Shown here one piece after another: positions 43,801 through 63,700 of a stretch of DNA of 64,000 nucleotides. Position 1 is the first letter of the stretch. The number at the start of each line of letters is the position of its first letter. Both the position numbers and the translations under genes were made by a program. This DNA comes from Perna viridis (Eukaryota): NCBI GenBank assembly GCA_037379345.1, contig CM074511.1, positions 52,892,862 through 52,956,861 of the forward strand, in the 5' to 3' direction. Under the pieces are notes generated by a model that searched no databases, was not told where the DNA came from, and saw nothing but the letters and a program-made list of their open reading frames with translations.

Positions 43801-46800
43801 TAACAGCTGAAGTTAATAATGATTACATATGAAAAACTTATAGAATAGGACGATAAAGATTTACTGTCACTGATCTATGAATGACTGGATGATTTTTCTC
43901 ATATAGTAATATAAACTGACAAATAATACCAAATTATGGGGAAAACAAACATTTTTGACATCTTATTTCTATTAAGAATAAACATCAAACACCAAAATTG
44001 GTTCCCATCAAAAAGAAGTATCCCACTGTTGTGTATACAGAAAACTTCAAAACCACAAATTCAAGAATCCATGAAATGTGAAAATACAATGAAATAACAC
44101 AAAAACAATATGCCATGAAATATTCTGATTATACAGTATATATACAAACATGCAGTTTACTAGCAACAGAGGTTTATAAGTTGTATATATTGTTGAGCCC
44201 TGGTGCCTTTCACATACAAAGACTATTGCTGGGTATAATAGTACATATGATAATGTATTGATTTAGTCCTTATAGACAGTTTATAGTAACACCAGGTCTC
44301 AACATGAGTTAACAGACATGCATTAAATAGCAAGCCAACAGTAACTCACTTGTCCCGTATGTAACAAGGATATGGAAACTGTTGGAGTATAACACCAATT
44401 TCTGAGGTTAGATTAGTTTGTACTTTTATTAGTGCATGGTCAACCATGTCTTGAAGGTAGACAAATCCGTAGCGGACATATCTATTCCAAGCTCTTGGCC
44501 CAGGTCGCCAGTACCTATGAAAAGTAACAAGCAATTATATAAAATAGAACTGTACATACTTATCTTGAATGTAGCATGGATAAGGGAACATCTGAGTTAC
44601 AACACCAACATCTGATGTGCTGTTAGTCTGTAGCTTTATAATGGCATGGTCTATCATATCTTGTAGGTATGCAAACCCATAAGTTACATATTTAGTATCA
44701 GTAGGAGCTGTTGACCTTGGCCCTGGTCTCCAGTATCTATAACATATCTTATTTTATTGTACAAGTAAATTTGGTATAATATGACTGCAATAGCTGATCC
44801 TATATGTATCCACATAATATGATATGAAATGTTTCCAAAGTATATCAGAATTTTTAATACAGCAGCAAGTATAGAAGTCAACACTAGATAACAGCATCAT
44901 AATAAAAATGTGAAATACATATTTGAATCCGATCTTTCTTATCAATAAACACTTCTGCATGTTATAAAATATTTTTTCTGTATAAAAGAACATCTTTGCT
45001 CTCTCTCAAGTCAAGCTAAGTGGACAATGAACCAGTACTTCACTTGAACAGTGAAGTGAACCAAAACCTATATTATAAATATAATGTCTGTAAGTCAAGC
45101 TCAGTATATACTCCACCTGTAATTGACATTAATTGTGAAGAGAACCCAAACATCTATTAGAAATATAATGTCAGACAAGTTAAGTGGAAACTGTACCGGT
45201 ACTTGACATGAACAATAAAGAATATCCCAACTCACTATTACAAATATAATGTCAGTGGATACTGTACCGGTACTAGACATGAACAATAAAGAATATCCCA
45301 ACTCACTATCACAAATATAATGTCAGTTGATATTGTACCGGTACTAGACATGTACAATAAAGAGAACCCCAACTCTCTAATTTAAATATAATGTCAGTGG
45401 GTAGTGTACTGGTACTAGACATGAACTATGAAGAGAACCCCCACTCTCTAATGTAAATATAATGTCAGTGGATACTGCACTTGTACTTGACATGAACTAT
45501 GAAGAGAACCCCACTTCACTATTATAAATATAATGTCAGTGGGTACTGTACTGGTACTAGACATGAACTGTGATGAGAACTTCAGCCCTCTATTAAAATA
45601 ATGATTTGCAAACCTATCTTGAATTCTGTTTGTTGTATCTACTCTGTCTTGATTCATCCTTATGGAATATTTTACATGGGTTGCTAATCCATTCTGATAA
45701 TCTTGGTCAAATACAATGGCTAAAACACAAAAGTTCTTCTTGTAAAAAATCTGCATCTATTTGGTCCTTAATCAAATTATTTCATTATAATCATGTCAAA
45801 CTGTTCTTAGCAATTACCACAATATACCTTTATCTACTACTGATATTCAGAAACTGTGTATTTCAATTTGATACAACAACCAAATGAGTAAAAAGCATGC
45901 AAAGATAATTGGTTGTGTATGTCTTTCATCTAAAGTTTAAAAGAAGCCAACAAATCCCAAGGAAATTTATTCAATATTGATCATTTATTTTATATCATGG
46001 AAGTAGTTATGTTCAACTTAACATTTCTTAAAAAGCTTTAAAAAGCTACCTTTGAAAAGTTAAGACCAATGACCTGACAATGGGCCCATCTAAAATATTT
46101 AATTTGCCATCAGGATGACAAAACTGCAATACACTAGACCTAGACCTAGATACCTACCTCCAAAGTACTTATTCTGACCAATGAGTTTCAGACTTTCAAC
46201 TGTCAATTCATATTCTGTTTTAAAGCCCACAAACTTGTCAAACACAAAGCACTGCAAAAAGCAATAAATATAAATATACAAAATGTAAGGTCTTTTTTAA
46301 CTAGGGTTAGAAACAAGCCACAAGTAGGAAAGACCATTCAACAAGAGATTCAAGTCGCCTGCTGTAAACTTTGACATCATAATAAAGTTCAATTAATTAT
46401 CATAATTTCACTTTCATGAAAAGTGTCATAATAAACTAAAACTAAATTACAACCAAAATTTATGGAATACAGTAATTGAACCTTTTCATGAATTTAGTAA
46501 AAACCAAAAAAAACATTACACAGATATTATTCTTCAAATAACAATTTACCAATAAAATTAACTTTATGAGTTTTTTCATTGGAATTTTTACTAATTGAAT
46601 GATATTTATTTGGATGAAACTATCAATAGGACTAAACCATGTATACAACTTACCTTTCCACACTCTGACACTGTTTCTAACACCTGGTTGACCATGTATA
46701 TAACTTACCTTTCCACACTCTGACACTGTTGTCTAACACCTGTTGGACCATGTATATAACTTACCTTTCCACACTCTGACACTGTTTCTAACACCTGTTG

Positions 46801-49800
46801 GACCATGTCTATAACTTACCTTTCCATACTCTGACACTGTTGTCTAACACCTGGTTGACCATGTCTATAACTTACCATTCCATACTCTGACACTGTTTCT
46901 AACACCTGGTTGACCATGTCTATAACTTACATTTCCACACTCTGACACTGTTTCTAACACCTGGTTGACCATGTCTATAACTTACCTTTCCATACTCTGA
47001 CACTGTTGTCTAACACCTGGTTGACCATGTCTATAACTTACCATTCCATACTCTGACACTGTTTCTAACACCTGGTTGACCATGTCTATAACTTACATTT
47101 CCACACTCTGACACTGTTTCTAACACCTGGTTGACCATGTCTATAACTTACATTTCCACACTCTGACACTGTTGTCTAACACCTGGTTGACCATGTCTAT
47201 AACTTACATTTCCACACTCTGACACTGTTTCTAACACCTGGTTGATCATGTATATACTTACTTTCCACACTCTGACACTGTTTCTAACACCTGGTTGACC
47301 ATGTATATAACTTACCTTTCCACACTCTGACACTGTTTCTAACACCTGTTGGACCATGTATATAACTTACCTTTCCACACTCTGACACGGTATCTAACGC
47401 CTGGTTGACCATGTCTATAACTTACCTTTCCACATTCTGACACTGTTTCTAACACCTGGTTGACCATGTCTATAACTTACCTTTCCACACTCTGACACGG
47501 TATGTAACGCCTGGTTGACCATGTCTATAACTTACCTTTTCACATTCTGACACTGTTTCTAACACCTGGTTGACCATGTCTATAACTTACCTTTCCACAC
47601 TCTGACACTGTTTCTAACACCTGGTTGACCATGTCTATAACTTACCTTTCCACACTCTGACACTGTTTCTAACACCTGTTGGACCATGTATATAACTTAC
47701 CTTTCCACACTCTGACACGGTATCTAACGCCTGGTTGACCATGTCTATAACTTACCTTTCCACACTCTGACACTGTTTCTAACACCTGGTTGACCATGTC
47801 TATAACTTACCTTTCCACATTCTGACACTGTTTCTAACACCTGTTGGACCATGTCTATAACTTACCTTTCCACACTCTGACACTGTTTCTAACACCTGGT
47901 TGACCATGTCTATAACTTACCTTTCCACACTCTGACACTGTTTCTATCACCTGGTTGACCATGTCTATAACTTACCTTTCCACACTCTGACACTGTTTCT
48001 AACACCTGGTTGACCATGTCTATAACTTACCTTTCCACACTCTGACACTGTTTCTAACACCTGGTTGACCATGTCCATAACTTACCTTTCCACACTCTGA
48101 CACTGTTTCTAACACCTGGTTGACCATGTGTATAACTTACCTTTCCATACTCTGACACTGTTTCTAACACCTGGTTGATATTGTTCAGGGCATCTTTCCA
48201 AGTATAATTAGATATATTTATATCATTGCCACTATACAGGAACCTAAACAAAGGATCACATGGACTGTAATTTGGGTCCACATCACACATGAATGAGAAG
48301 TTTAGTCCCGCTGCTTGAGTGATATAGTTGTTCAGTGCAGCTGAGGCAAAACCAGGTATGAGAGATGAGATATCAAATCCCCCAACAGTTTGGCCTGTCA
48401 GGATATCTGATATATTAAATCCTGGGAGTGATCCATTACAGGCTGTTTGTCTAAATGTATGCCAGACATCATCACAAACCTCAGAGCATGTAAAGTCCTG
48501 AAATGAAGTAAAAGCTGTGAAAGAACTTTTAATCTGGACTATCAGTTTTCATTGGTACACATTTTTTCTCTAAAAATCTAATTTGTATGAAATCATGGCT
48601 ATTCACCATGAAAGGGCTAACCAACCAAAGAATGTTACAAAAAAATAGGGACTAGTACTCCATGAGAACATTTTGCAGATTTTTCAAATAATTAAGCCAA
48701 TGTTTCTGAAACTAATTAAAAAACAAAATATCATAGTCACCACAGGCTTACAGTTCATACTTTAACAATATGACATTAATACATGCACTACATATAGGTG
48801 ACCTTCGTTTATAAAAACTAAATAATGTTAATGATAGGTTACCCTCAATAGTTGAATATTTGGATCTGTATCAAGGAAATTGAACAAAGAATCAGATTCT
48901 ACCCTCCATGTATTAGCAAGATCTACAATGCTGAACAGATCATCAAATGTCTTGTTTGCCTAAAAAATAAATAATTTATAATGATAGAGCACAGTTTTAA
49001 TAACAATTTTTGATAGTTATTGTAAATATATAAATTTTCACATTGAACTAATTTTTGCTATTTTAATGGTGGACTGAAAAGCATGAAAAATAGTACTTTA
49101 CACTAATAATTTTTTACACCATTAAGATTGATACCCGCAAATATGGTCACTTGACAGAATCCACAAAAATTAGCAGCTGCAAAAATTAATAAGTTTATAG
49201 AAATTACGAGGAATAGGGTTGGTTTACCCTTGATTGAATTACCCTTAACTCATTAACTTAATGGACAATTGACAAAGAGATATGAATTTTCTATCAGACA
49301 TACACTCAAGTACCTATGAAATGATAAAAAGGTTGAATCTCCTTGTTATTTGTCCAGTGATCTACCTATGACAGTTCATCAAGTTGTAATCATTCAATAA
49401 AGGGAAGACCAACTTTATTCCCTAAAGTCGACTACATTTTAAATCACTGTGATATCCAGTCATATTATATTTATACACATGTAATTCCTTTTTATGTTTA
49501 CACCACATTTAAGGAAGTACACCTAAGGTAAGGGACATAACTCTTGAAATCAGTGATACGTTTGTATCATATTCAATTTCACCAACGCCTTTCAATCAGT
49601 CCAAGTTACTTTGATGCTTACATGAGATTGATGTAAAATGCTGAATACAAATGTTTACATGATTCGTAAGAGTTGTGTCCCTTACTCTAGGTCTACCTCC
49701 TCAAAACACTGTCATTTCTTGTTCATGAACGAGAATTAAGATTAAAATTTACAATAAAAGACAATATGGTATTGAGAAATTGACCATACAAGCCTGCTCA

Positions 49801-52800
49801 TTACGATTCCTGTCATTTTCAGTTAAAATTATAGGGATGAAGAGACAGCGAAGTCCTACATATGTAGATCCTCTGTCAAAACATGAATATTTCAAAATTT
49901 TTCTGTCCGAATTGACGTATGAAGTAAGTGTGTGATTGTTTGAACTTTTAACACAGATACCCATCAGTGGGAAAATATCACATATTCCCGCAGGACACGA
50001 CATCAGCAATATAACAATATAATGGTGCATTTATTAATCAAGTTAAATGTAACTTGAATACAAATAGCTCCGTCCCTAATAAGAAAAGCCTAAAATTAAA
50101 TTAAAGTTCAAGACAGAACAGGTAAATTTAAACAAAGGAGCCAAAATTTTTAATGAAATATAATAAAACCACAGCAATGAAATAACATACCATTCTAATA
50201 ACTTCATTTACTGTTGTACTGTTAGGAGCATATGGAATCTTTCCTTCAACAAGAGGCTCCAGTTGTCTCCATATTACTTGTCCAAAGTCAGTTGACTCTA
50301 AATTATCCACTAAATCTGCACAAACTGTTCCTAAAAAAAAAAACCAAAAAAAAACCACAATATTGTCATGACTTCTGAAATATAGAACAGGGTATATGTT
50401 ATTTACTCTACTCTAAACAATGTATGTTACTTACTTTACTCTGAACAGAGTATTTGTTATTTATTGTACTCTAAACAGAGTATTTGTTACTTACTCTACT
50501 CTAAACAGAGTATTTGTTACTTACTCTACTATGAACAGAGTATTTGTTACTTACTCTACTATGAACAGAGTATATGTTACTTACTCTACTATGAACAGAG
50601 TATATGTTACTTACTTTTGCACTGAACTCCTGGATTTCCTATAATTTCCTTTCTGTTACCACAATTATGGCAATGTGGGTGTTTTCCTCGTTTAGATTTA
50701 TACTGACCAGCTGGACATGGCTTACAAGTGTTACCAGCAGAATCATAGAAATATCCTCTATCACAATACACTGCAGTAAAAAAGATTAAAGTACTAATTA
50801 ATACTCTTTATCACAGTACACTGAGTACACTGAAGTAGAAACAGATTATAGTTCATACAATAATGACATTTTTCTTTTATAAATTTGGCAATAATCCACC
50901 CAGTTGTTTCAGAGGAGAATATTGCTAAAAAAAAAGTTAACAATGACAAATGAGACCACAGATGCCAAGTGATGACAAAAGCTTGAATGGCCTTTGGCCT
51001 GGAAAGCTAAACAGCCTTGATATGTAGCAGTGTATAATATTTCAGAATCCACACATGTGATACAACACTCAACAAAAATTAACTGTTTTAAACAATTATT
51101 GTCTATCAAACGAAAAATGTAGGCATTAATTAGTTAGATAATAATCCTATCATCTTCAATTCTAGTATAAGAATGATTTTATCATCACTTACATTCACTA
51201 CACTGAGTTCTGTCACTTCTGGTGGAAGTCTTATGACCAGTACACCTTTTACATTCAGTTTTCCCACCTGTTGGCTTGTAATGATCATCCTTACACGGAG
51301 CACATGAATCTGTTCCTTCCTTCCCTGGGCCACAGTAAACTAAAATACAAATGCTTTACTGCATCAATCATGATCATATTTTTTTCCCACTGAACACTTT
51401 ATTTTGATTTCCAAATGGACTATTTGCAACACATAATTTAAATGCATCTTTTAATTAATAAGTAGCTATATTCATATTTCATTAAATTAAACAATCAGAT
51501 AAAAATTAGAGTGAACTTACATAGTTACATACATTTTCAAAAGTGCAAGTGTTATGTTTTTGATGAAAATTTTTTTACAAATAGCACATAAATTTTTACA
51601 TAATAAACCCCAAAAAGATTTTGGTGTTTTCAAACTGTAAATCTTACTTTTACAATCATCCTTCTTAACTGAACCTGAATATGTGGTGTTTTTGTTAGGG
51701 TCACAGGTAAGACATGTTGCCTGGGCCCGTGAAGGCTGGTAAGTCCCATAGCTACAGGGTGTGCATTTACTACCATCTATATAAGTCCCTGGGGCACAGT
51801 CCACTGAAAGGGAAAAAATCAATTCAATGTTAATGTCATAATAATGTAACATGTATTCAGGCAACCTAAGACAAAAATATCTCGTATCAGTTTTTTGCAT
51901 CCACACATGGTTTGCTGATAAAAAAAAAATTACTATAAATGTTATTAAAAAAGAAGTACATATATAAAGTATAAAAAAACTCGTGTATCCTTGACTAAGA
52001 AGACAAATGTTGTGTATTCACCCTTGTTACTAACAAGATAGACCTGTGTGTGTTTCACTAAATTCAATCTACCATATGTATGTAAACAATTTTAACACAT
52101 GATAAAACAATGCTTTGAGTGGATATTTTTCATTCCGGTGGAATTGACATATTCATCATATCCATTTTTGTTAAGTTAAAAAATACTTACAAGGCTAAAA
52201 TCAAGAAGGGACTTGTGTAAAAGTGCATGATACCTAACCTCCAGTGACTTTTAAAGTTTGAACAATATTGTTTACTGACAGAATGAAATATCACAGTTAA
52301 ATGTGCAATATATGTTACATGAATGGAAATATATAGTCACATCTTTCACAGTACTTACAAACACACATAGTTCTATCAGCACTAGATGTATATCCATCAG
52401 GACATTGAATACATTCTTCAATACTAGATGTTGACTTGTAGTAGCCTTTCTGACATGTGTCACAATTATTGCCTTCTGAACCAGCTGGACAAATCCCTTT
52501 AAAAGATGACAGAGAATAATAATAAGATAGTTAATAGGAAAGAGTGAATAAGATATTATCATGAGTGCCAAAGAATGCCTAGATTTAACGAGTGTGTGGA
52601 ACTTGTACTGCGCACATGTTTAATCCTTAAGCATTCTTAGCACGAGTGTTTTACAATAACCAATTGATTATCCTATTTATTATACAGATTTTTTTCATAA
52701 TTCATCGATATTTTCAACTTTAATTATAAATTCTGTGATTGGTGGATTGATATCAAAGTTGTGACGTTTTGGCAGGAGTAAGTCCCAAAGTTACATTACT

Positions 52801-55800
52801 GAATTTATTTCACAGTGTGAACTATCGAAATTTTTTACACTGGGAACATTCGATAAAACACTGCTATCTTTATAATAATAAGTATATACAATATCGATTT
52901 CATCAGTAAACTTTGTGTTTTTGTAATTTTTTTCTTACAGATTCAATATTCAAGAAGAAAAAGTTACCATATGAACTTACTTATACAATTTGTAGCAGAT
53001 TTTGAGCCAGTAGAAGTAGTGTCATGGTTAGCTGGACACATGGTACAGGAAGTTTGGTTGTACTGGGATTGGTAATATCCCTTCATACACTGAGAACACT
53101 TGCCATTGCTGATGTAATATCCAGGGGAACAATTCACTGAAAAGAAATATTGATTACAAATGTTGTTGAAGGAAGGTTATACCAGAATTTTAATTGTAAA
53201 ATCACAATAATCATGCCTTGATCTGTTACCAGAATGGATAGTCAAGATCACCTGCAACCTGGATATTGTACTCTAAACTGACACGCAAAAGTGGAACAAG
53301 AACGTTTTTAAATGTTTGAAAAAATAAATAACTAATTTTGGTAGAATCTGACCATCATTAAGATAAGTAATAATATTTGTGGAAAGAAATCACTGATGTA
53401 CTGTACTGTAATTGTTACAATTTCAGACCTGGATAAAATGTTAATGAATATACAATATACTCCTTTTACACCATTTACTTAAATAATGACTGGAAAAAAA
53501 GTTTGATCACTTTGGTCATATCCTAAAGATGTAGTCTCCCCTTTAGGCCCTAAGAGTTATATCAATCAACAAACCAAAACCACAGAATAATTTAAGAATA
53601 AAAAAGAATACACAGAAAGGGTCACCCCTACTTTTTCAGTAATAAGTAGAAATCTATAAGCCAATTTCCACTTGTAGTAGCCTCACACCAGAAATTTAGA
53701 TTATGGTGAAATATAAACTGAGTTGTGTGCCAAACAGGAAGTTGAAGTGTCTAAGCCTAAAATCAATCCCACAATATTATACACTATACAAAACTTGTGC
53801 TCAAATATCAAGTGGCTTTGGCAGACAGTTGCACAGAAAACTGTAATGAAATCTAGTGTGATGGACATATGAATAGACAAGGGTAAAAAGGTATATTCCC
53901 TTCTTTATGGGTATAATTAGGCAGACTCACTAATGCTACATCCTGTTCTTGTAGAATCTGATGTGGTCTGCTCAGGACATTTCATACAGGGATACAGTCC
54001 ATCAGTTGGCTTATAATATCCCTGGTCACATGGTTCACAATTGTCATCCCCCTCTTTACCAGCACTACAGGTAACTACAAGATTTTAAAGCAATATTATA
54101 GCGTTCTATAGTTATCAAAATATGAAGTCTATATTTTTTTTTCCTCAAATATATTACTGTCAGAGTAATCACAGTCATTTTTTAACCAGTAAGTTCTATT
54201 AGGCCTTTTGCAATAGGAAAAAATGTGATACAAATAACAAAACTTTAAAAAAAATCTGTTGATTATTTTAGAATTTCATAAACATTAACATGTTATTTAT
54301 TCTGCGTATAAGTTCACCTTGGCAATCTTTTTCTTTAGTAGAAGCAGTTGAATTAGTTTTCAGATTATCTTCACAAGGCTTGCAGGATCCTTGATTAGCT
54401 TGTGGTTGGTATGTTCCAACAGGACAAGGGAGACATCCTTGTCCAGAAATATAGTATCCAGGTCTACACTGAGTTGTTCCCCCTCGACCACAAACCAAGG
54501 ATTGGACAGTTTGTGTGACATTCACATTTGTTCCCATGGTAGCCCCTTGAACTTGGCTAAACAGATTCTCAACTGCTGTAATAATTCCTTGGTCACGTTG
54601 ATAAATTGCATACAGCTTCATGAACTGAAACAAAACATCATTTTATTTGCATACAAAAAGAAAAAGAACAAGCCTAAAACACACTTTAACAAGGCAGGGA
54701 TACATGCTAAATGTAAAGTATTGGTTTTCAAACTGAATATGAAACAAAACTGTTACTAGCAAAGAAGACTTCAAATAATATAAAATCTATTCAGAATTTC
54801 AATCATCCCAGTTTATGCTACTTAATGAGAATCCATATTTTTGAAAATTTTATGAAAATGGTCCATAAAATTCTGAATTTCTAACATACTAGTAGGTAAG
54901 TAGAAATTCACATTCATAACTTGTAGTCTTAGTTCGTAGAATCAGTTAAGGTAAACAACTCTCCAATTTTATCCCATATCTTATGAAAATGACCACAGTA
55001 AAAATGACTTAGTATATTAAGTTTAAAAAGGGAATGTTAACCACATTTATCTATAAAAGGGAATGTTCACCACATTTATCTATAAAAGGGAATGTTAACC
55101 ACATTTATCTATAGATAGTTATTCTGGTAATACTAGTTTCTAGGTTAAAGCGAACTAAACTGTAAATTTATATGAACCATGATAAGTTTAGAAAAGCTTT
55201 GGTTGAGTTGTTCTCTACTTTACATATTGAAACTAAAACTGCAAATGATGGACATGTAAAACCAAATCCATTTGGATGGAATTAAAATGAAGAATAAAGT
55301 ATTACAAAATGTATATTGTTGACTTTTTAAGATGCTGGCAACAAAAACTTTTTTAAAACAGCTAGAAATCTAACAGTGTTAAAACCAAGTTTTCATTTTC
55401 AACAATGTTTCATTGTATGCAACTGAAGTATAAATACCACAGGAAAAAATACTCTGAAAATCAAACATTTAAGTATGAATATTACTAAGTTTATCTTCTG
55501 TATCTATATTTTCCCATGATTTCAATGTACAAACACTCCTAAGAACTGGGTTTTTCTATTTCAATGTACAAACACTCCTAAGGACTGGGTTTTTCTTGTA
55601 TCTTTTAATGAACTTACATCCTGATAAAGTTGCAGGAACTGGAGTGGATCTGATAGTATTGATTGTCCAGCATTTCTTTCAATATAATTCAAAATCTGTA
55701 AAACATACATCATATTTATCTTGGAAATAGTTAAAAAAAAAAAATGAAAACTGAAAGTGAACAAAGAGTTAGAAAAATGCATATGCCTTCTACACTTTTC

Positions 55801-58800
55801 ATCAAAAGAAACATTGACTTCCTATATCCACAGTTCACTTAAGAAAAAAACCGAAGGTAATATGTCTATATTACTGTCAACTTTCATAATAGTGTAAATG
55901 CATCCAGTATATCCCATTGAACAAATGTATTTTTCCCATAATAGTAAACAAGAAGTAGTTGTAAGTGCTGCATACCAAATATCAAGTGATTATGATCAGT
56001 AGTCCCTGAGAATAATGTTAAGAAAGTTCTGGTTACAGATGAAATGACAGATAAAGCTAAAACAGTATACCCCCTTTCTTCTAAGCAGGAGTATAATAAA
56101 AATAATGAAGAAGGTTGGGAAAGGTGCAGAAAAAAATTGACCGGTTGTGTACTGATATACAGTGAGCGAAAGTGATGGGAAATATTAATCAATTAAACCT
56201 AACTAAACTGTTTTGAGAAATTTCATAATTTACCCAACCTTAAATAAAACTCTAATTTGTACTTAATGATATATATGACTTTCTGAAAAATTTCATGTTG
56301 TGTAAGAAAATTGCATTATGACCAAAAACTTACCTTCAATCAGAAACTTGTGAAGTAACCACAAAAAATTGAATTTCAGAAGTAACAAGCTTTCTGGATA
56401 GATAATTTTTTTGTCCATCCTCTCATAGACCAAATTTTGTAATGTGACTGTGAAATTATCATCATTTTTTAGGATTTAATCATTAAATTTTGATACTAAA
56501 ATTAAACTACAAGGAGTGACAGTTAAATTTTTTCAGTCAATATCAAATAAACCTCAAACCCTTTGGTTCACACTAAAAAATAACCTGCTACACAGGATAT
56601 TTACTGTGCACCACTTAATTGAGGTAATTTTTCATAGACAGAAAAATAGAGCAGTAATTCATTAAATACATGTACTAATAAATTACCACCTCATACATGT
56701 ACTTATTACTCCTCCAATGACTAACATTTCTACATTGATGTTTACCTCATTTCTAGCATTAGGATCATTGAGTGCTGACAACAGTAGAGCATATAACTGG
56801 TCAAACTGAGGTGAAGTGAGGTTACAGATCTGGTTCTGTACAGTCTCTCGTACACTGTCTGATGGAATGATCAGAGTTCGGTTTAAGTACCCTTGTTCAC
56901 ATAGGAGATTCTGTAAGTCCTGAGCTGTCATATTGGTTCCAGGAATCTGACCTCCAGCTGAAGAATTAGTTCTGTTTACTGAGACACTGCATTCTCCAAA
57001 GTCTAACAGTAAACCAGTCGGTAACTGTCAATAAAACATATGTTTTTATAATATGATTTGTTACTTATTCTACCTTACACTTCCTTGTAACTCCTCTGAC
57101 AAAACAAATAAAAATACAACAACTTAAAATTAAAAACCAAGTAATTTCTTTTGATATATGTTTTTCATATGCTTACGAAAAATGATATTTCAAATACGTT
57201 GTACATCTACTGACAACATTTATATTTTTTTATATTTTTTTAAAAGAAAGTGTTCCCTATGTCCTAACTTAAGTTTCTTTTCACATGTTGGATTCACCTG
57301 AAGGTGATAAAAGTCATGTACTTTATAACAGATGTCTGTTAATGTCAATGGTTAATAAATATTCACCACATATAGTTACCATAGTCATCTATAGGTCAAA
57401 AACTACTACTATACTCACAGCAAGGTTTATACTGGAATTGAGAAGTTCATCCACAACACTAGGAGACAGACTAATGTTACTGTTGAGTATCTGGTTACGT
57501 AGATCAGTAGGGTTGGTTACAATATTACCAAGTGATAAACCACCTTGAATGATAATCAAGTTTTTTTATTCAGTTAGATCAAAAGTACTCCAATTTTAAA
57601 AATGTTTTGGAAAATACATTCTGAGATTAATATTTTATAACATATCTGTTTGCCCAAAAATAAGAATTTGAAAATAAATACCCAACTACAAAACAAAAAT
57701 CTTCAAACCAAATAGAAAATTAAAAAGCTTCGTTGAAAGCAGCATGATACAACCACAGCCAGTTGAGCTCTGTTCACTTGACGCAAGTGTGGACACAATA
57801 TTAGTTTTCGACACACTAAACATAGGGACTTACAGTTCATTATGGACAGAAAAACTCATTTGGACACAATATTGCACAATATTTTTTAATTCAATTTTAG
57901 TATAAATTCTGCTTCAGGGTGTATTCATCGATCACTTTGTACCTCATTATATCAAAAACAGTACATGATGAGGTTAATTTGGTAAGCATACTTCTTAAAG
58001 CTCTTGTATTTAGGCTGGGATTTTCATATTAAATCCTAAGAAAACTTTTTTTTTGCAAAACTGCACCAAATATTATCAATCCAAGTCTGACCATTGTGGT
58101 ATGGAATACTGTGGAAAAATATGAGCGACATTCCTATGCTTTTATTGGCATTACACAGTTAAATTCCATGAAATGCTTGTTTTAGACCCCTTTATGGCCT
58201 CTAATTCTTAAACAGTTGGGGGAGGGGGTAATAACCTCTGAAATCAATACCAACCTTCCTTTTGTGATTTAGGACTTTGTACAGTGGATTCCGCTTAATT
58301 GCATAGCCTAATTGCCAGTTAAAATTATGCAAATAACCGGGCTATTCTTATAACCGAAATTACGATTTGACCGGAAGTGTGAGTTCAGGTAAGACGACGA
58401 TACTGTGGATCAACCAGGGATATCACTGTTCAACATTTCTGATCTGGTATTTAATTGTTATAGACCTTCTCATTGTATTGTTCTTTTATCAATAAATAAT
58501 AATATATATTGTGTTTGTCTTGTTTATTGACCTTCTTTACGTTGTGTGTATTTATAAGTAAAACCACGTGTTTCTCATCTATAAATAGTCAAGTAATTTC
58601 CTGACCTTTCTACGAAAGCAAATCCCATATTTCATATTTCAGCCAGGATTCAGTGTAATATTCATAAATGTTTGCAGTTTGTGGGCTTTTGAAATGGTCT
58701 GTGTGTTTTTATTCCTCTGTTCATTGTACACTGATAGTTGTGTATTATACGGGTCATTGACCTCGATATATTCCTATGAAGTGTGGATAGTATGGGGCAC

Positions 58801-60724
58801 CTTAGGGTAGTTGAATTTCATTAGACATTGTACTGAATGAATGACTTTTAATTTTCGTATAATATTTATGCCTAGTAACCCAAGCTCACTCAAAACTGTT
58901 CAGCTCATTAAAGAAAATTAAATTTACATTGATAATCATTTGTAGTCGGAAGAATTTAAATAGGGACAAAAAATACCCCAAGCCGAACCTCAAGCCGCAT
59001 CATAAGGTGATGTTCGGCATGTCGTCAGAAGTCATTGTTCACCTAGGTGCTTGTTTATTTTAATGTAATTAGAAATCATTTATATTTTCTTTCATGTCCA
59101 AGATTTTTTTAATCCATTATTAACACCTCCTGATTGATGATAATCTAGTTTTTACAACAATAAATATGATTGACATATTTATGACCCCAAGGCTTAAAAT
59201 AGAATTTGGGAAAACCTGTCTTTACCTGGACGAGGCAAAATTCTCTATGCAATAAACCGAAATGCACCTCCAAGGCCTATGCAAATAAGCGATTTTTTCC
59301 TTAATAGAATAATAGGAAATGGTTTTGTGCAGGAGAAAATTATGCTAATAACCGAAATATGCAATAAAGCGATATGCGATTAAGTGGAGTCGACTGTATT
59401 AACATTTTATAAAGATCAACCAACTAATACCCAAGTTATCACATTAAAACCAAGTGTTTAAGGAATATACTTCCTAATAATTTGTGTCCATTTCATCCCT
59501 ACCTGTAGCAGTGCCATTTCTTATCATTCCCAATACCCTCAGTATGGTCTGGCCATCTTGTAGTAAATTTTGTACTAATGAAGGCTCCAAAATCTCTCCT
59601 AAATCTTCTAAGATTCTCGTTATTCTGAAAGTAAATAACTACATATTTTTACCTTACACCTTATCCAAGAGGTTAATAGAGCATTTTTCATGTTATGCAT
59701 TCGTGTAATCCTAGGAAACATGAACCAACATTTTAACTGTACTTGTGTAAAATTTTGGTTAGTTAAAATTATACATTTTGTTTTCTTCCAAAGTTGCAGA
59801 AATCACAAGGTCAAAGTAATGAATATTAAACAAGGTAACATGTACTAAAAATAGTCAAAAACTATAAGTAATAGACCTAAGGCAAAACCAACCCTCATAA
59901 ATAGTAGTTTGGCATTTTTTAAACACATTTGTACTATTAGAAGTAGTTTTGAATGACATAAGAAGTGGGGTATAAAAACTGAACATTTCAAAATTATTCA
60001 TGGCCGATAGCCTTGGGCCACTGTTTTAAACTTAAATAATAGTATTATAAACTTTTATCTTAATATATGTTCTTACAATGACTGCTGATTGCCCGAAGCA
60101 GTGAATCCAGGTCTTTCATCAGCTGTAACAGTGGACTGACATTTTTGGTCAGCATTACAAATAATAGATTGCATGAAAGGCCAGGTGCCAGCACTTGGCA
60201 TTGCATTTCCATCAAAATGGCCTACAAAAGAAAGTAGTATACAATCTTGATTAGAACATTTTGATTTGCCTTTAAAAAATAATGATGATATACAGCTAGT
60301 AAAATATTTTAGTTACCACATATGAAAGTGTTTTAGAGAACTTTTTACAATGGATGTGTAGTATTAAGTGAGTACAAAAATAAAAGTGTGGGTATTTGAA
60401 TTCAACTAACCTCCATTTTTACATATCTTCACATAGAACTTCCTATAAACCAAAGAACTGCTAGTACTAAAACTCATTTTTGTTGAAGAAACAGTGAAAT
60501 GTCATCTTTAAAAATTACACTATTCTCTCTGTGGAATATTATATATCAGTTCTTGAGAGATACACTGGCCATTATAGTGACTCCTTTCTACTCGTTTTTG
60601 ATCTTATAATACACATTTTGCACTTACATTCATCATGTCGAACTTTTAAATCTGGACGAGTTCTAACAATCACTAAAATTAAAAAGAGTGCCAAAGGAAA
60701 GGCTACTTCTGCAAAAAACCGGAA
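16753..60724 (-). CDS. ABCA1: ABC transporter subfamily A, ABCA1-like full transporter (multi-exon, 5'-partial: first coding exon missing); ECD1 carries 7 Cys-rich repeats
   Basis: ~54 GT-AG exons join in frame (8316 nt using exon 44560-44736). Motifs: [28 protein letters not shown], Walker [11 protein letters not shown] and [10 protein letters not shown], signatures LSGGMKRKL and YSGGNKRKL, Walker B ILDEPTAG and [35 protein letters not shown]. Exact orthology within the ABCA1/2/4/7 group is not established. Confidence 0.93.
17200..18243 (+). mobile_element. Helentron/HINE-like non-autonomous element (left boundary uncertain)
   Basis: Internal tandem blocks, gacg microsatellite and 3' palindrome cccgtc-tta-gacggg; the caagtgtggacacaatat block recurs at 57784. 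Confidence 0.45.
18272..18388 (-). CDS. ABCA exon: C-terminal tail ([23 protein letters not shown])
   Basis: TAG/GTAAGT, phase 1-1, open; no homology support. Confidence 0.7.
20029..20110 (-). CDS. ABCA exon (VFIHFASKQ, equivalent to the VFVNFA motif)
   Basis: CAG/GTAGGT, conserved motif. Confidence 0.9.
20156..20332. repeat. 29-bp minisatellite, ~6 copies
   Basis: aatagcctagttcctgtgaatgttaatac repeats. Confidence 0.92.
20485..20694. mobile_element. MITE, TTAA-flanked with GG termini (Kolobok-like), copy 1
   Basis: TIR ggaggtagacctagggtaaggga / tcccttacccaaggtttacctcc; second copy at 49513. Confidence 0.75.
20705..21178. repeat. 18-bp minisatellite, ~26 copies
   Basis: gacagattgatattaaag repeats. 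Confidence 0.95.
21328..21568 (-). CDS. ABCA exon: regulatory domain 2 (FGDGY...[13 protein letters not shown])
   Basis: Conserved motif. Confidence 0.94.
21888..21980 (-). CDS. ABCA exon: NBD2 ([17 protein letters not shown])
   Basis: Conserved motif. Confidence 0.95.
22325..22428 (-). CDS. ABCA exon: NBD2 Walker B/D-loop
   Basis: [17 protein letters not shown]. Confidence 0.95.
23028..23162 (-). CDS. ABCA exon: NBD2 signature
   Basis: [17 protein letters not shown]. Confidence 0.95.
24025..24166 (-). CDS. ABCA exon: NBD2 Q-loop
   Basis: GYCPQFDA...LTGRE. Confidence 0.95.
24795..24976 (-). CDS. ABCA exon: NBD2 Walker A
   Basis: [18 protein letters not shown]. Confidence 0.95.
25181..25313 (-). 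CDS. ABCA exon ([12 protein letters not shown]...ENLTK)
   Basis: ED.DV..ER.RI motif. Confidence 0.92.
25556..25685 (-). CDS. ABCA exon: TM12 (VGRNMLSM...EYNFF)
   Basis: Conserved motif. Confidence 0.9.
26077..26212 (-). CDS. ABCA exon: TMD2 ([12 protein letters not shown])
   Basis: Conserved motif. Confidence 0.92.
26655..26805 (-). CDS. ABCA exon: TMD2 ([16 protein letters not shown])
   Basis: Conserved motif. Confidence 0.93.
28077..28192 (-). CDS. ABCA exon: TMD2 (VNYLIP...LLVLYG)
   Basis: Conserved motif. Confidence 0.92.
28558..28735 (-). CDS. ABCA exon: TMD2 ([14 protein letters not shown]...KHLQFVSGV)
   Basis: Conserved motif. Confidence 0.95.
29175..29344 (-). CDS. ABCA exon: ECD2 (VWYNNKGW...[11 protein letters not shown])
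   Basis: Conserved motif. Confidence 0.93.
29566..29746 (-). CDS. ABCA exon: ECD2 (RYGGFSFG)
   Basis: Conserved motif. Confidence 0.9.
30142..30262 (-). CDS. ABCA exon: ECD2 (GAGGPEPP...[12 protein letters not shown])
   Basis: Conserved motif. Confidence 0.92.
30395..30912 (-). mobile_element. 5'-truncated retroelement 3' fragment, copy 2 (intronic)
   Basis: Encodes [55 protein letters not shown], resembling the post-RT region of Penelope-like elements. Confidence 0.72.
31129..31253 (-). CDS. ABCA exon: ECD2 ([13 protein letters not shown])
   Basis: C.CSS....CP motif. Confidence 0.88.
31455..31718. repeat. 22-bp minisatellite, ~12 copies
   Basis: tctggacagtatgttataaaga repeats. Confidence 0.93.
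31729..31833 (-). CDS. ABCA exon: ECD2 (SND...MGNRCM)
   Basis: G.RCM motif, phase 2-2. Confidence 0.88.
32181..32323 (-). CDS. ABCA exon: TM7 ([12 protein letters not shown]...PPLELHPW)
   Basis: Conserved motif. Confidence 0.92.
33027..33193 (-). CDS. ABCA exon ([24 protein letters not shown])
   Basis: Conserved pre-TM7 motif. Confidence 0.9.
34907..35041 (-). CDS. ABCA exon: basic linker ([16 protein letters not shown])
   Basis: AAG/GTAAGT, phase 1-1, open. Confidence 0.72.
35305..35386 (-). CDS. ABCA exon (VFLRVADE)
   Basis: Continues LEE-VFL motif. Confidence 0.88.
35703..35905. repeat. ~114-bp diverged tandem duplication
   Basis: atgccttgttaacttttttaca...agggcct.taagcta...caggaagcag occurs twice. 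Confidence 0.75.
36092..36300 (-). CDS. ABCA exon: regulatory domain 1 ([14 protein letters not shown])
   Basis: Conserved motif. Confidence 0.92.
36554..36680 (-). CDS. ABCA exon: acidic/PEST-like linker (DIEDEGFGD...KPPTPPPE)
   Basis: CAG/GTATGC, phases 0-1 fit. Confidence 0.8.
37353..37618 (-). CDS. ABCA exon: NBD1 H-loop
   Basis: [22 protein letters not shown]. Confidence 0.95.
37755..37892 (-). CDS. ABCA exon: NBD1 signature/Walker B
   Basis: [15 protein letters not shown]...[14 protein letters not shown]. Confidence 0.95.
38138..38478 (-). repeat. 57-bp tandem repeat of NBD1 exon end plus donor, 6 copies
   Basis: Unit encodes DVGLPHK(R/W)RELSSSLSG(NK/YT). Confidence 0.95.
38426..38565 (-). 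CDS. ABCA exon: NBD1 up to the signature ([14 protein letters not shown]...LS)
   Basis: Conserved motif; the first of six duplicated donors is assumed. Confidence 0.88.
39111..39242 (-). CDS. ABCA exon: NBD1 Q-loop
   Basis: [12 protein letters not shown]. Confidence 0.95.
39603..39777 (-). CDS. ABCA exon: NBD1 Walker A
   Basis: [12 protein letters not shown]. Confidence 0.95.
40323..40451 (-). CDS. ABCA exon ([19 protein letters not shown])
   Basis: Conserved motif, phase 1-1. Confidence 0.92.
40665..40869 (-). CDS. ABCA exon: TMD1 (VAFGFGC...WYIEAVFPG)
   Basis: ORF track plus splice sites. Confidence 0.93.
41397..41735 (-). mobile_element. Degenerate tRNA-derived SINE
   Basis: tRNA-like head with B-box gttcaatcc (41675-41683, minus strand) and a (caat)n tail; a similar tail remnant lies at 6343-6420. 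Confidence 0.6.
41772..41993 (-). CDS. ABCA exon: TMD1 (YSDPTVV...FFSKANIAA)
   Basis: ORF track plus splice sites. Confidence 0.93.
42482..42825. repeat. ~43-bp degenerate minisatellite, ~8 copies, abutting a splice donor
   Basis: ggtaaagataatcaaggtaatctaaaacagttgcctaagacct repeats. Confidence 0.88.
42826..43048 (-). CDS. ABCA exon: TMD1 ([16 protein letters not shown])
   Basis: Hallmark ABCA motif. Confidence 0.95.
44350..44514 (-). CDS. ABCA exon variant B ([27 protein letters not shown]...FPYPCYIRD)
   Basis: 165 nt, phase 2-2, TAG/GTGAGT; paralogous to 44560-44736. Confidence 0.87.
44560..44736 (-). CDS. ABCA exon variant A ([31 protein letters not shown]...FPYPCYIQD)
   Basis: 177 nt, phase 2-2, TAG/GTATGT; absent from the ORF track, translated by hand. 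Confidence 0.9.
45020..45602. repeat. ~71-bp minisatellite, ~7 copies
   Basis: aatataatgtcagtggatactgtaccggtactagacatgaac... recurs every 71 bp over most of the array. Confidence 0.88.
45614..45719 (-). CDS. ABCA exon: ECD1 (AIVF...HVKYSIRM)
   Basis: HVKY.IRM motif, phases 1-2. Confidence 0.88.
46158..46251 (-). CDS. ABCA exon: ECD1 ([16 protein letters not shown]...)
   Basis: ABCA C...DKF motif, phases 0-1. Confidence 0.88.
46637..48178 (-). repeat. 55-bp tandem repeat of exon end plus GTAAGT donor, ~28 copies
   Basis: ccatgtctataacttacctttccacactctgacactgtttctaacacctggttga; the terminal copy overlaps exon 48141-48497. Confidence 0.97.
48141..48497 (-). CDS. ABCA exon: ECD1 (DFTCSEVC...[22 protein letters not shown])
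   Basis: 357 nt open, CAG/GTAAGT, YTW motif. Confidence 0.85.
48843..48959 (-). CDS. ABCA exon: ECD1 (ANKTFDDL...)
   Basis: ABCA (A/V)NKTF motif, phase 0-0. Confidence 0.88.
49513..49700. mobile_element. MITE, Kolobok-like, copy 2
   Basis: Same TIRs and internal sequence as 20485-20694; ttaa/tcaa flanks. Confidence 0.75.
50191..50330 (-). CDS. ABCA exon: ECD1 resumes ([10 protein letters not shown]...[17 protein letters not shown])
   Basis: Matches ABCA C..L...LES....IW..L.PL..GKI.Y.P. Confidence 0.92.
50384..50614 (-). repeat. 30-bp minisatellite starting at a splice donor, ~8 copies
   Basis: Minus-strand unit gtaagtaacatatactctgttcatagtaga. Confidence 0.92.
50615..50770 (-). CDS. ABCA exon: Cys-rich repeat 7 ([49 protein letters not shown])
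   Basis: 156 nt, phase 1-1, CAG/GTAAGT. Confidence 0.87.
51193..51339 (-). CDS. ABCA exon: Cys-rich repeat 6 ([45 protein letters not shown])
   Basis: 147 nt, phase 1-1, TAG/GTAAGT. Confidence 0.88.
51648..51803 (-). CDS. ABCA exon: Cys-rich repeat 5 ([49 protein letters not shown])
   Basis: 156 nt, phase 1-1, CAG/GTAAGA. Confidence 0.9.
52359..52496 (-). CDS. ABCA exon: Cys-rich repeat 4 ([43 protein letters not shown])
   Basis: 138 nt, phase 1-1, AAG/GTAAGT. Confidence 0.88.
52981..53136 (-). CDS. ABCA exon: Cys-rich repeat 3 ([49 protein letters not shown])
   Basis: 156 nt, phase 1-1, CAG/GTAAGT. Confidence 0.9.
53931..54074 (-). CDS. ABCA exon: Cys-rich repeat 2 ([44 protein letters not shown])
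   Basis: 144 nt, phase 1-1, TAG/GTGAGT. Confidence 0.88.
54318..54624 (-). CDS. ABCA exon: ECD1 (..QSLVCG) fused to Cys-rich repeat 1
   Basis: SLVCG motif followed in the same exon by [32 protein letters not shown]. Confidence 0.9.
55026..55112. repeat. 29-bp triplication
   Basis: aaaagggaatgttaaccacatttatctat x3. Confidence 0.85.
55618..55695 (-). CDS. ABCA exon: ECD1 ([26 protein letters not shown])
   Basis: CAG/GTAAGT, phase 0-0. Confidence 0.75.
56746..57024 (-). CDS. ABCA exon: ECD1 (LQNLLCEQ...NQICNLT)
   Basis: AG/GT, phase 0-0, ORF track 56683..56931. Confidence 0.82.
57419..57543 (-). CDS. ABCA exon: ECD1 ([11 protein letters not shown]...[13 protein letters not shown])
   Basis: AG/GT, resembles ABCA NLSL..S.VD..L segment. 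Confidence 0.8.
58282..59396. mobile_element. 1.1-kb non-autonomous pogo/Tigger-type DNA transposon
   Basis: Imperfect 24-bp TIR cagtggattccgcttaattgcata / tatgcgattaagtggagtcgactg, TA flanks, subterminal aataaccg repeats, no transposase ORF. Confidence 0.8.
59503..59624 (-). CDS. ABCA exon: ECD1 ([12 protein letters not shown]...)
   Basis: AG/GT, open frame, phases 2-1 fit neighbours. Confidence 0.8.
60077..60221 (-). CDS. ABCA exon: ECD1 start ([23 protein letters not shown])
   Basis: Conserved ABCA CHF..AMPSAG motif, phases 1-2. Confidence 0.92.
60628..60724 (-). CDS. ABCA exon: TM1 ([32 protein letters not shown])
   Basis: AG/GT bounded, resembles ABCA TM1. Confidence 0.9.
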
Positions 60725-63700
60725 CTGAAAAATAAAAAATAAATATCTACATTGTAATTGTATTTTCATTATCTTATGTGATGTTACAACCACAAAATGA
60801 TGCTTAAAACCTCTTTTAAACATCTATATGTCTATATCACATAAATATTAGAGTATTGATTATCATGCCTATCACAATCTCCAAAGCAAAAATCAAAAGT
60901 TGTTTCAAACATGTCTTTTTCCAAGCAAAACTCAGCAAATAGAGGATAAAGATAAAAAAATTAGAAAAAAAACTAAAAATTCTCATTATAAACATGCCAC
61001 ACACTCTACACTGAAGCATGCAATTTGCATAATAAACTAATATCAAGATTGCCTCAGAAAGTTTGTTGTGGTCTTAATCAACAATTTGGCATATGGTAGA
61101 GGAAATGAAGTTAATATAACCAACTCCCTTTATCTTTGGAAAATTTCATGCAACCTGCACATTTCCATTAAGTACATAAACTGCCTAGAAAAGCTGCACT
61201 TGAAAACTGTAGAAGAAGATAGCCAGACAAACCATTTACAATCTGCTACCTCTATGTAATATTGAAATTGCTAAGTTCAACTATCTCTGATTTTGGCAAT
61301 ATCCTTCTACTGATTTAAAGATTAAATCTTAATTTTATTTCCAACAATGATAGCACATATTCTCCAACACATATTTACTGACGATTTTGAAAACAGTAAC
61401 TGAATGATATAAAATGAATGACATACAGACTATGTTTTGTGTAGTGTTCAGTCTTCTGATGAATGGTGACATAAGGTATTCTGAAGGATCAAAATCCTAA
61501 AACCTGTTGCAGGAGATAGCTGGACAAACCATATACCACCTATTATCCTTGAGACAATTGAAATGCTTAGTTCAACTATCTCTAATTTTGCAATATTTTT
61601 TTAAATCAAAATCGTTTAGCCATGCAGATCTCTATTTTAGGTGCATATATAAACATTCTACAAAAATTCAAAGCTGAAGCTCAAAAACTGTGAAAGAAGA
61701 TAGCCAGATAAACCATGCACCACCAAACGGAACAGAGAGATGAAAGGATGAACAGACAAAGGTAATTTAAGATGCCCCTTCTCCCCAGGACATCTAGTCA
61801 TAGGGCATAAAAAAGAAACATTCAGGAAGACAATTTTTCACTTTAAAGTCCTGTCTGTTCTTTCTGATTAAGACTATGGCCTGGTAAGGATTTCACTGGG
61901 ACAGAGTATTTTTTGAAAACTACCTTCTATTTTTCCAATAACAATCTAACAGCAGTTTCTGAAAAGTTCTCTGACCAATAAGATTCCTAAGCAAGACTCA
62001 AGAGAACTGAATTTAACTCTGTTTAACATTAAATGTACTTAAGTCAAAAATAAGAACATATTGTTATACATGCATTTACACCTATATGTTATATCACATG
62101 TTGTACTTAACAATAATCCTCACAATTCTATCATGCTATAGCCTTTTAATAGCATTGTTAAATGTACTACTGAGATAAATATCAATAACAGTCATGACCA
62201 TGCTGATCCATAAATAGATTCTTTTCATATTATAATTACGGTAGATGAAAAATTTTCCAAGTTCTACTTTCTGACCAGGTACCTATGTACTGTTTTCTTT
62301 TATTTGCTGCTTTACAGAACAATATTATGGAATATGTCATTACTTCGTGAATTTACATGCCCTTGTGCAACAAAGAAACTGTTCTAAAAGACCCTGAGAG
62401 TCCTACTTAAAAGGCAATGCTCTTAGTGTTCTGAAAAATTCAAATAGTTTGATCAATTGATCCATCTGCAAGTTGTCTTCTTGGAAATTGACAGTGGACA
62501 GACACTCAACATTTCACAGGGTATCACATAATACACATGCACTTCAAAGCTTGACACTTCAAGTGCATTCCTAGTTTAGTTAAATTACAAATGTACTTAC
62601 GTTAATATTTGCTTGGCCTACATTTTTACTTTTCACTTTGTATTTGAAGGTGATATAGGTTACTTAAGTCATTTAAAACTTACTCAAATCATACCTCAGG
62701 TGCAAATACATTAAGGAGAAGGGCCAAGTGTATAACTCCCTCTATAGGTAAAAAAAGTTTTTGAATAAAATATCAATTTCCAAAATATTTTGTGATTACT
62801 TTTTTCCACAGAAATAAATCTTATTAAGTCCATTACCACCTGAAATCCTGTAACTACCCCTTTATAACCAAAACATATATGTCCGTTTTAAATTTTAGAC
62901 ATAAATAAAGCAATTCATAGAACTATTCCCTGTTTAAAAATATCGACATATTTATTACTCAGTGGTTGATTTCACAAAAAATCTTAAGTATAAAATTAAT
63001 CGTAAGTTCTGACGTCACATTTTTTTTTATTAATCATGATATTATAACTTACAACTATTGTTACATTTAAGAATTTTTGTGAAAAGGACTGCTGGTAGAT
63101 GTACACTGTATTTTAAAATGTCTGCTGTATTTTTTTTAATATAAAAAGATTATAAAACAACATTGAACATGTCACAAAAACGTGACATTTTTTAAACAAA
63201 CCATATACATGTATGTAACAATATGATCAATAGTTTCCAATGTGTATTTAGACAGTTCTACCTAATAATTTAAATGTTGTATGGATATACAAGAAACCAT
63301 GATGCTTAGTCATAAATAATTTTAATGATGTTCTGAATTGTGACCCAGAAGAAATGCCATTTAAACTACTGTCTTCATTAACCAAAACCAACCACTGACA
63401 TGTACTACATTAAAAATCGAAAAATCATTTTCAAGTAAGTCACCAAAAATTCTTGCCACAACAAAGTCTCTTGTAATCATATATTAAAAAAGTTGAAATA
63501 GAATGCTTTGAAGAGGGCAGCTAGATATGCCCCCAGAGGTCGAACCTGAATATCTGTCAGGGATATGTACAATGCAGGCATGAGAGCATTACAAGGTGTG
63601 ATGGACTGATTTGCTAAGAACCCCTTGCATTTCTTTGTTCCTGTGCCATGTTGTGATGGGAGACAATAATTTGATTAGTACCTACATGTATATAGTACTA

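Follow-up and report, generated by a model that had tools for sequence, protein, structure and literature searches.

A putative extracellular arm of seven Ephrin_rec_like modules encoded within an ABCA1/4/7-type transporter gene of Perna viridis

It is still a matter of debate how ABCA ectodomains deliver lipids to acceptors outside the cell, and to our knowledge these ectodomains are unlike any other known fold. Human ABCA1, ABCA4 and ABCA7 (structures 5XJY, 7TBW, 7LKP and 8EDW) share two transmembrane domains (TMDs) of the ABC2_membrane_3 type, two nucleotide-binding domains (NBDs) and a large first extracellular domain (ECD1) with a Cys54/75/81 cluster and a '(Y/V)C..L...LES' segment. Two ECD1 disulfides have been mapped, C75-C309 and C355-C504 in ABCA1 (bioRxiv 10.1101/2021.05.23.445323) and C75-C324 and C370-C519 in ABCA4 (PMC8501128); in both proteins 45 residues separate the cysteines that the two disulfides pin (309/355 and 324/370). 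No recognised receptor-type module has been described in the solved ABCA ectodomains (PMC8501128, PMC7932691, bioRxiv 10.64898/2026.08.25.746927). Here we describe an ABCA gene of Perna viridis that shares this plan, and whose flanking ECD1 exons find their best PDB matches in these human proteins; it differs from them in holding ~359 residues, in seven cysteine-rich modules, where they have 45. It lies in a 64,000-nucleotide stretch, hereafter the window, at positions 52,892,862-52,956,861 of contig CM074511.1 (C1) in the 723-Mb assembly GCA_037379345.1.

The modules belong to the Ephrin_rec_like/GCC2_GCC3 repeat family, of which SCUBE, SVEP1 and ELAPOR1 are members. Other proteins of this kind (thyroglobulin with its hinge repeats, Eph receptors, the Chlamydomonas mastigoneme protein Mst1) resemble the insert in Pfam family, six-Cys pattern and fold, and also in having tandem arrays, alternating subtypes and phase 1-1 exons. 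They differ in architecture: they are secreted or single-pass proteins with a linear ectodomain, whereas here the array interrupts a loop inside a polytopic ABC transporter and is tied to the host domain at both ends. We consider it probable that the gene encodes an intact, transcribed ABCA1/4/7-type transporter in which the ECD1 loop equivalent to Cys309-Cys355 is replaced by seven Ephrin_rec_like modules, forming a putative extracellular arm.

Seven cysteine-rich modules in the ECD1 region

Within the ABCA gene, seven minus-strand open segments each bear a six-Cys motif, and all seven score above the Pfam gathering threshold for Ephrin_rec_like (PF07699, 23.1 bits), modules 6 and 7 narrowly (coordinates and scores are in the table). 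Modules 1, 3 and 5 are of a 51-residue type A, alternating with modules 2, 4 and 6 of a 45–48-residue type B; module 7 is divergent. Eight positions (C2, G5, C13, C16, Y21, C30, C33, C50) are invariant in 13 of 13 module copies from three species. Because of these scores and the six Cys, one Gly and one Tyr kept in every copy, we do not regard the seven modules as a chance pattern. AG/GT is found at every border from the exon that carries module 1 (exon A) to the exon where ABCA sequence resumes (exon 8), giving one consistent splice model, and none of the seven codons split between these exons is a stop. The original prediction, made from the letters alone, had placed seven six-Cys repeats of this family here, with ~350 residues in total, in-frame joins throughout and a first repeat sharing its exon with ABCA sequence, and all of this was borne out.

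Exactly 359 residues separate the cysteine of the 'VCG' motif at the end of the ABCA part of exon A from the next ABCA cysteine, and ~348 of them belong to the modules. The linkers between the array and its anchoring cysteines are only 7 and 4 residues long, so the points where the array leaves the ECD1 core and returns to it must be fixed. On the downstream side, exon 8 aligns from its first Cys to ABCA1 residues 354–395 (E 8e-6), followed by ABCA7 and ABCA4; by this alignment that Cys is shown to be the counterpart of ABCA1 Cys355. The original prediction had given a ~45-residue loop at this place in ABCA1 and ABCA4, in agreement with the published disulfide maps. On the upstream side, a 'VCG' or 'MCG' motif was found in the window, in two homologous contigs (L001 and L002, below) and in a paralogue. 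The 'VCG' segment aligned to no solved ABCA when single sequences, the paralogue's exon or a three-sequence profile were used as queries.

The host gene is otherwise what the original prediction had said, an ABCA lipid transporter. All sequence searches of the gene were made exon by exon. Two TMD exons, each scored as a single exon, pass the cut-off of PF12698 (ABC2_membrane_3, 31.6 bits), one NBD exon matches PF00005 (ABC_tran) and a second slightly misses its cut-off; both Walker A motifs can be read directly in the NBD exons. Alignment to ABCA1 55–99 places the Cys75/Cys81 pair in the 'IICNA...C' segment of exon 60076-60312, and the cysteines typical of ABCA1 ECD1 (human 54/75/81 and 355) are found in this exon and in exon 8. 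As judged from these matches, the gene is a full transporter of the ABCA1/2/4/7 type, with two ABC-2-type TMDs and two NBDs, and it is conventional apart from the insert. Its product would be expected to transport lipids in the ordinary ATP-driven ABCA cycle.

N-glycosylation sequons occur in modules 1, 3 and 5, and those of modules 1 and 5 lie at identical positions in L002. Given ABCA topology, in which ECD1 is exoplasmic, and the conservation of these two sequons between species, the modules are presumably extracellular or luminal, with their disulfides formed.

Table. Features of the ABCA gene and its insert in the window
Feature	Position	Strand	Evidence or remark
Exon A: 52 ABCA ECD1 residues ending '..SLVCG', then module 1	54318..54624	minus	phase 0->1, AG/GT
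Module 1 (type A), inside exon A	54319-54471	minus	PF07699 43.4 bits; same fused exon in L001 and L002
Module 2 (type B), 144 nt, phase 1-1	53931..54074	minus	PF07699 27.9 bits; L002 orthologue 57% identity, equal exon length
Module 3 (type A), 156 nt, phase 1-1	52981..53136	minus	PF07699 44.0 bits; no L002 orthologue
Module 4 (type B), 138 nt, phase 1-1	52359..52496	minus	PF07699 25.0 bits; no L002 orthologue
Module 5 (type A), 156 nt, phase 1-1	51648..51803	minus	PF07699 35.1 bits; L002 orthologue 67% identity
Module 6 (type B), 147 nt, phase 1-1	51193..51339	minus	PF07699 23.3 bits; L002 orthologue 69% identity
Module 7 (divergent), 156 nt, phase 1-1	50615..50770	minus	PF07699 24.7 bits; L002 orthologue 69% identity
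Exon 8: ABCA ECD1 resumes	50191..50330	minus	aligned to ABCA1 354-395; L002 orthologue 61% identity
Contig joints	54318/54074, 53931/53136, 52981/52496, 52359/51803, 51648/51339, 51193/50770	minus	CT..AC ends (GT..AG on gene strand)
ABCA ECD1 exon next upstream of exon A	55618..55697	minus	RNA contig joint 54624->55618; contig piece end 55697
Whole ABCA1/4/7-type gene	~21300..60823	minus	open segments with ABCA motifs, PF12698, PF00005, ABCA1 alignment
First transmembrane (TM1) exon	near 60,600-60,800	minus	open segment with ABCA motifs
ECD1 exon	60076-60312	minus	aligned to human ABCA1 55-99
PF12698 (ABC2_membrane_3) match	42805-43095	minus	32.7 bits; Pfam, single exon
PF00005 (ABC_tran) match	39602-39814	minus	24.6 bits; cut-off 25, slightly missed; 26-residue exon fragment
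PF12698 (ABC2_membrane_3) match	28543-28794	minus	50.2 bits; Pfam, single exon
PF00005 (ABC_tran) match	24776-25045	minus	39.2 bits; Pfam
Last coding exon	near 21,316-21,591	minus	open segment with ABCA motifs
Tandem array, 30 bp x 7.8	50385..50615	.	Tandem Repeats Finder (TRF); start of intron after module 7
Intron-start tandem arrays	50385-50615, 38135-38478, 42478-42822, 45183-45568, 46636-48178	.	unit = preceding exon end + 5' splice site

Transcripts, other species and a paralogue

Expression was examined in sequencing runs of the same species. Fourteen runs, whose RNA label is a guess, hold 22–25% of the words sampled from 50191-54624, close to the exon share of that interval (1344 of 4434 bases, ~30%). 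Four of them, from four different studies, were compared with 50100-55900. Each of the four yielded one contig of 6.8–9.1 kb that carries all eight exons at the predicted borders, with canonical ends at the joints (table) and skipped lengths equal to the predicted intron lengths. All four also contain the joint 54624/55618 (CT..AC), which leads to the upstream ABCA exon. The splice junctions of the original prediction, running from 54318->54074 down to 50330, were thus recovered, except that the last, 50615/50330, is not listed as a joint (a T-run is skipped there); contig coordinates at that point are contiguous within four bases. Because the contigs lack introns and have exact canonical borders, they represent spliced RNA. 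An origin from a retrocopy is unlikely, because exon 8 matches the genome at only two places, each inside a gene with introns. No module-skipping joint was listed in the contigs of the four runs, assembled contigs being prone to drop rare variants.

Two side observations concern the same contigs. In the intron between modules 3 and 4, at ~52,580-52,880, contig depth reached 300–700, versus 18–85 in the exons, and each of the four runs showed many different joints as well as loose ends; the likely source is a dispersed repeat of which other genomic copies are transcribed. At positions 52409 (module 4) and 54352 (module 1), some transcript contigs have G where the assembly has A (plus strand), probably polymorphisms between individuals.

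We searched for relatives of the fused exon in other species. A whole-library phmmer search with exon A gave 704 matches, in a library that evidently lacks full-length animal models and so says little about the spread of the architecture. Two exon-sized fragments matched exon A across its ABCA part as well, at 64–65% identity, and their contigs, L001 and L002, come from two different metagenome assemblies in ENA. L001 carries an ECD1 exon and, downstream of it, the fused exon, whose donor is at the equal position. L002 (7.6 kb) spans the whole insert: it has the fused exon and exon 8, and between them counterparts of modules 2, 5, 6 and 7. Its module exons (144, 156, 147 and 156 nt) have AG/GT borders, and their lengths and phases equal those of the window. 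At the place of modules 3 and 4, L002 has no Cys-rich coding segment; with these two lacking a counterpart, the L002 species has five modules. The two contigs are not copies from within the Perna viridis genome, because exon 8 at 61% identity was not found there. They are only 67% identical to each other in module 1, and since they differ both from each other and from the window's genome, at least three species share the insertion.

Modules at the same position are 57–73% identical across species, whereas different modules of one gene are 20–49% identical. This position-specific identity means that the array was already differentiated before the species split. In the pooled orthologous module exons and exon 8, the proportions of nonsynonymous (pN) and synonymous (pS) differences were 0.21 and 0.71, for a corrected ratio of ~0.12 that is rough because synonymous divergence (dS) is near saturation; DNA-level alignment between the species was confined to exon sequence. 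This pattern indicates that the module exons and exon 8 are under purifying selection. The distance of module 3 from module 1 is about the same whichever of the three species supplies module 1, and the module 3–4 pair may have been either gained here or lost in the lineage of L002. Just upstream of the module 6 orthologue, L002 also has a degenerate partial type B copy (4431-4553) that lacks several of the Cys and appears to be a pseudo-exon left to decay after a local duplication.

Other searches added no further relative. A scan of JGI metagenomes with the three-species alignment found none. A homologue search with exon A, whose length limits exclude full-length proteins, returned only the gene's own open reading frame (ORF), and the ESM Atlas gave only weak haptophyte Ephrin_rec_like clusters (score at most 0.81). 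The best 150 of the 704 phmmer matches were considered as ABCA relatives and rejected: they are multi-repeat Ephrin_rec_like proteins, without ABC sequence in local BLAST against the window's NBD, TMD and ECD exons. Eight candidates were also scored with Pfam, and none is an ABC transporter (0/8).

The same contig carries another ABCA1-like gene at a distance of 2.7 Mb (C1 55,653,000-55,678,000; loci L005 and L007). Its ECD1 and TMD exons are 44–78% identical to those of the window gene and follow the same order, and it too has a VCG-type motif; it differs in having an ordinary loop. Its 'FVCG' precedes ordinary, non-Cys-rich sequence and then the 'PVCRNLVNELNSNP' exon, and the 6.8 kb between its ECD1 anchor exons gave no Ephrin_rec_like match. 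By these comparisons the insert is specific to one of two ABCA1/4/7-type paralogues on the chromosome. Genome-wide, no other ABC2_membrane_3 match was found near an Ephrin_rec_like match among those scored, which for PF12698 were 30 of 1717 candidates, a lower bound. Ephrin_rec_like exons themselves are numerous, with at least 126 matches. They form large clusters on contig C4 (21.5-21.7, 23.8-24.2, 49.7 and 17.0 Mb) and at C1 56.74-56.76 Mb, which suggests that proteins made of such modules have expanded in this lineage.

Full-text literature searches, with InterPro, UniProt and animal proteomes outside their scope, found no paper describing an ABC transporter with Ephrin_rec_like modules. 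Two apparent matches were set aside as irrelevant: in one, for ABCA with GCC2_GCC3, 'ABCAA' was a letter code, and in the other, for ABC transporter with Ephrin_rec_like, the domains were on separate proteins. The architecture thus appears undescribed as far as the literature was checked, and the insertion lineage-restricted. Automatic gene models of this protein very likely exist already.

Origin and possible role of the array

Module 5, folded with the 13 module copies as its alignment, gave a model with a mean predicted local distance difference test (pLDDT) score of 95.5. Its best structural match was a thyroglobulin repeat (template modelling (TM) score 0.93, root mean square deviation 0.6 A), followed by cysteine-rich domains of Eph receptors, CaSR and TNFR; against those of EphA4, EphB2 and EphA2 the TM score was 0.70–0.75. 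PDB sequence searches with the modules agree with these matches. In the predicted structure, then, module 5 has the TNFR-like Ephrin_rec_like fold.

Symmetrical phase 1-1 exons are a classic substrate of exon shuffling, and the array was probably built by shuffling and duplication of such exons, with A-B alternation and a divergent last unit. It predates the divergence of Perna viridis from at least two other species, and module number later changed by one A-B pair, with seven modules here and five in the L002 species. A recent donor was sought and rejected. The nearest repeats elsewhere in the genome are at most 48% identical to module 5, no closer than the modules are among themselves, so the donor is untraceable.

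With both ends tied to the ECD1 core, and exoplasmic by ABCA topology, the array might project from the ECD as a rigid disulfide-bonded arm that binds a putative extracellular partner. Our leading guess is that the arm would hold a lipid acceptor or carrier protein near the lipid tunnel of the ECD. The original prediction had likewise suggested a stalk that could dock an acceptor or ligand. The ECD of ABCA1 is thought to pass lipids to apoA-I, according to a passage in PMC8501128 that cites the ABCA1 structure.

Several points weigh against our reading of the insert as an arm in the Cys309-Cys355 loop. That the arm docks a lipid acceptor or another partner from outside the cell close to the tunnel is a guess, to which we give less than an even chance. 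Seven rod-like modules with both ends pinned near the core pose a geometric problem: would they form a hairpin or an arch? The equivalence of 'SLVCG' with human Cys309 ('IVCG') is putative, being drawn from a short motif and from exon order. The partner of the Cys355 counterpart (human Cys504) may not be kept: near 48,100 the exon ends with Y at a place where its tandem copies have C. Finally, minor module-skipping isoforms may exist, and module exons 2–7 can be skipped in frame.

Two rivals question whether the long protein exists as such. An artefact, whether a separate gene nested in this one, a chimeric assembly or a contig joined wrongly, has practically no chance of being the explanation: module 1 is encoded in the same exon as ABCA sequence, transcript contigs of independent origin connect the array with ABCA exons at either end, and the same arrangement occurs in independent metagenome assemblies of other species, so that the transcript contigs and L002 contradict a nested gene and an assembly error alike. 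It is also very improbable that the modules are cassette exons mostly skipped, the usual protein being a conventional ABCA and the long form minor or tissue-limited. The phase 1-1 borders would let any subset of module exons be skipped in frame, and the loss of rare variants in assembly could hide such forms; however, all seven modules are in the assembled contig of each of the four runs, from four studies, with no skipping joint listed, the word share of the 14 runs is near the exon share, and skipping cannot remove module 1 without taking ABCA sequence along.

The remaining rivals accept the insert and differ on what it does. We think it rather unlikely that the array serves self-association or anchoring (transporter clustering, matrix or glycan tethering) in place of lipid-acceptor docking. 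In Eph receptors and SCUBE proteins the cysteine-rich regions contribute to clustering or to binding at the cell surface, Eph-receptor domains are among the closest folds, and 126 or more Ephrin_rec_like exons, many of them clustered on C4, are typical of adhesion and recognition repertoires; but the insert sits inside a lipid-handling ECD and not at a terminus, which suggests a tie to the role of the ECD. A bolder form of the docking idea, a putative built-in receptor that would catch a lipid acceptor, or some other extracellular ligand, where the ECD tunnel opens, and whose reach is tuned by gain or loss of an A-B pair (seven versus five modules), seems unlikely. If true, it would combine transport and acceptor docking in one polypeptide, the first ABC exporter known to have its own receptor-type ectodomain. 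More doubtful still is a passive spacer or shield without specific ligand, which would lengthen, stiffen or glycan-protect the ECD. A pure spacer could tolerate the different module counts, and the sequons of modules 1, 3 and 5 suit a shield; by contrast, the maintained position identity (57–73% versus 20–49%) and a pN far below pS exceed what a spacer needs beyond its cysteines.

If the array is only a spacer, the gene is a curiosity of invertebrate domain shuffling. The graft of these conserved receptor-type modules at a loop pinned by two structural disulfides shows that the site tolerates a large insertion, and the array offers a purifiable handle for finding extracellular partners of an ABCA transporter. 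The locus is also a clean, datable case in which exon shuffling reached an inner loop of a polytopic membrane protein.

Intron-start arrays and a neighboring reading frame

At least five introns of the ABCA gene open with tandem arrays, of 30–71-bp units in 5–28 copies. Since their units repeat the end of the preceding exon together with its 5' splice site, each such intron begins with a row of spare donors. In the array that follows module 7, every unit repeats the 5' splice-site sequence, and the transcript contigs use the first donor, 50615. L002 also has tandem partial copies of its module 7 exon end, at 5310-6121.

At another of these arrays (~48,057-48,178), the first copy of the exon end has '...LETVSEYGK', and its tandem repeats, which extend to ~46,460, have '...LETVSECGK'. 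This LETVSE(Y/C)GK site lies close to where human ABCA1 has Cys504, which forms a disulfide with Cys355, and the product may gain or lose a cysteine near 48,100 depending on the donor used.

Downstream of the ABCA gene and on the opposite strand, the window contains an uninterrupted, Ser/Lys-rich ORF of 749 amino acids (7525-9771, plus strand). The window as a whole is AT-rich, with a G+C content of ~32%.

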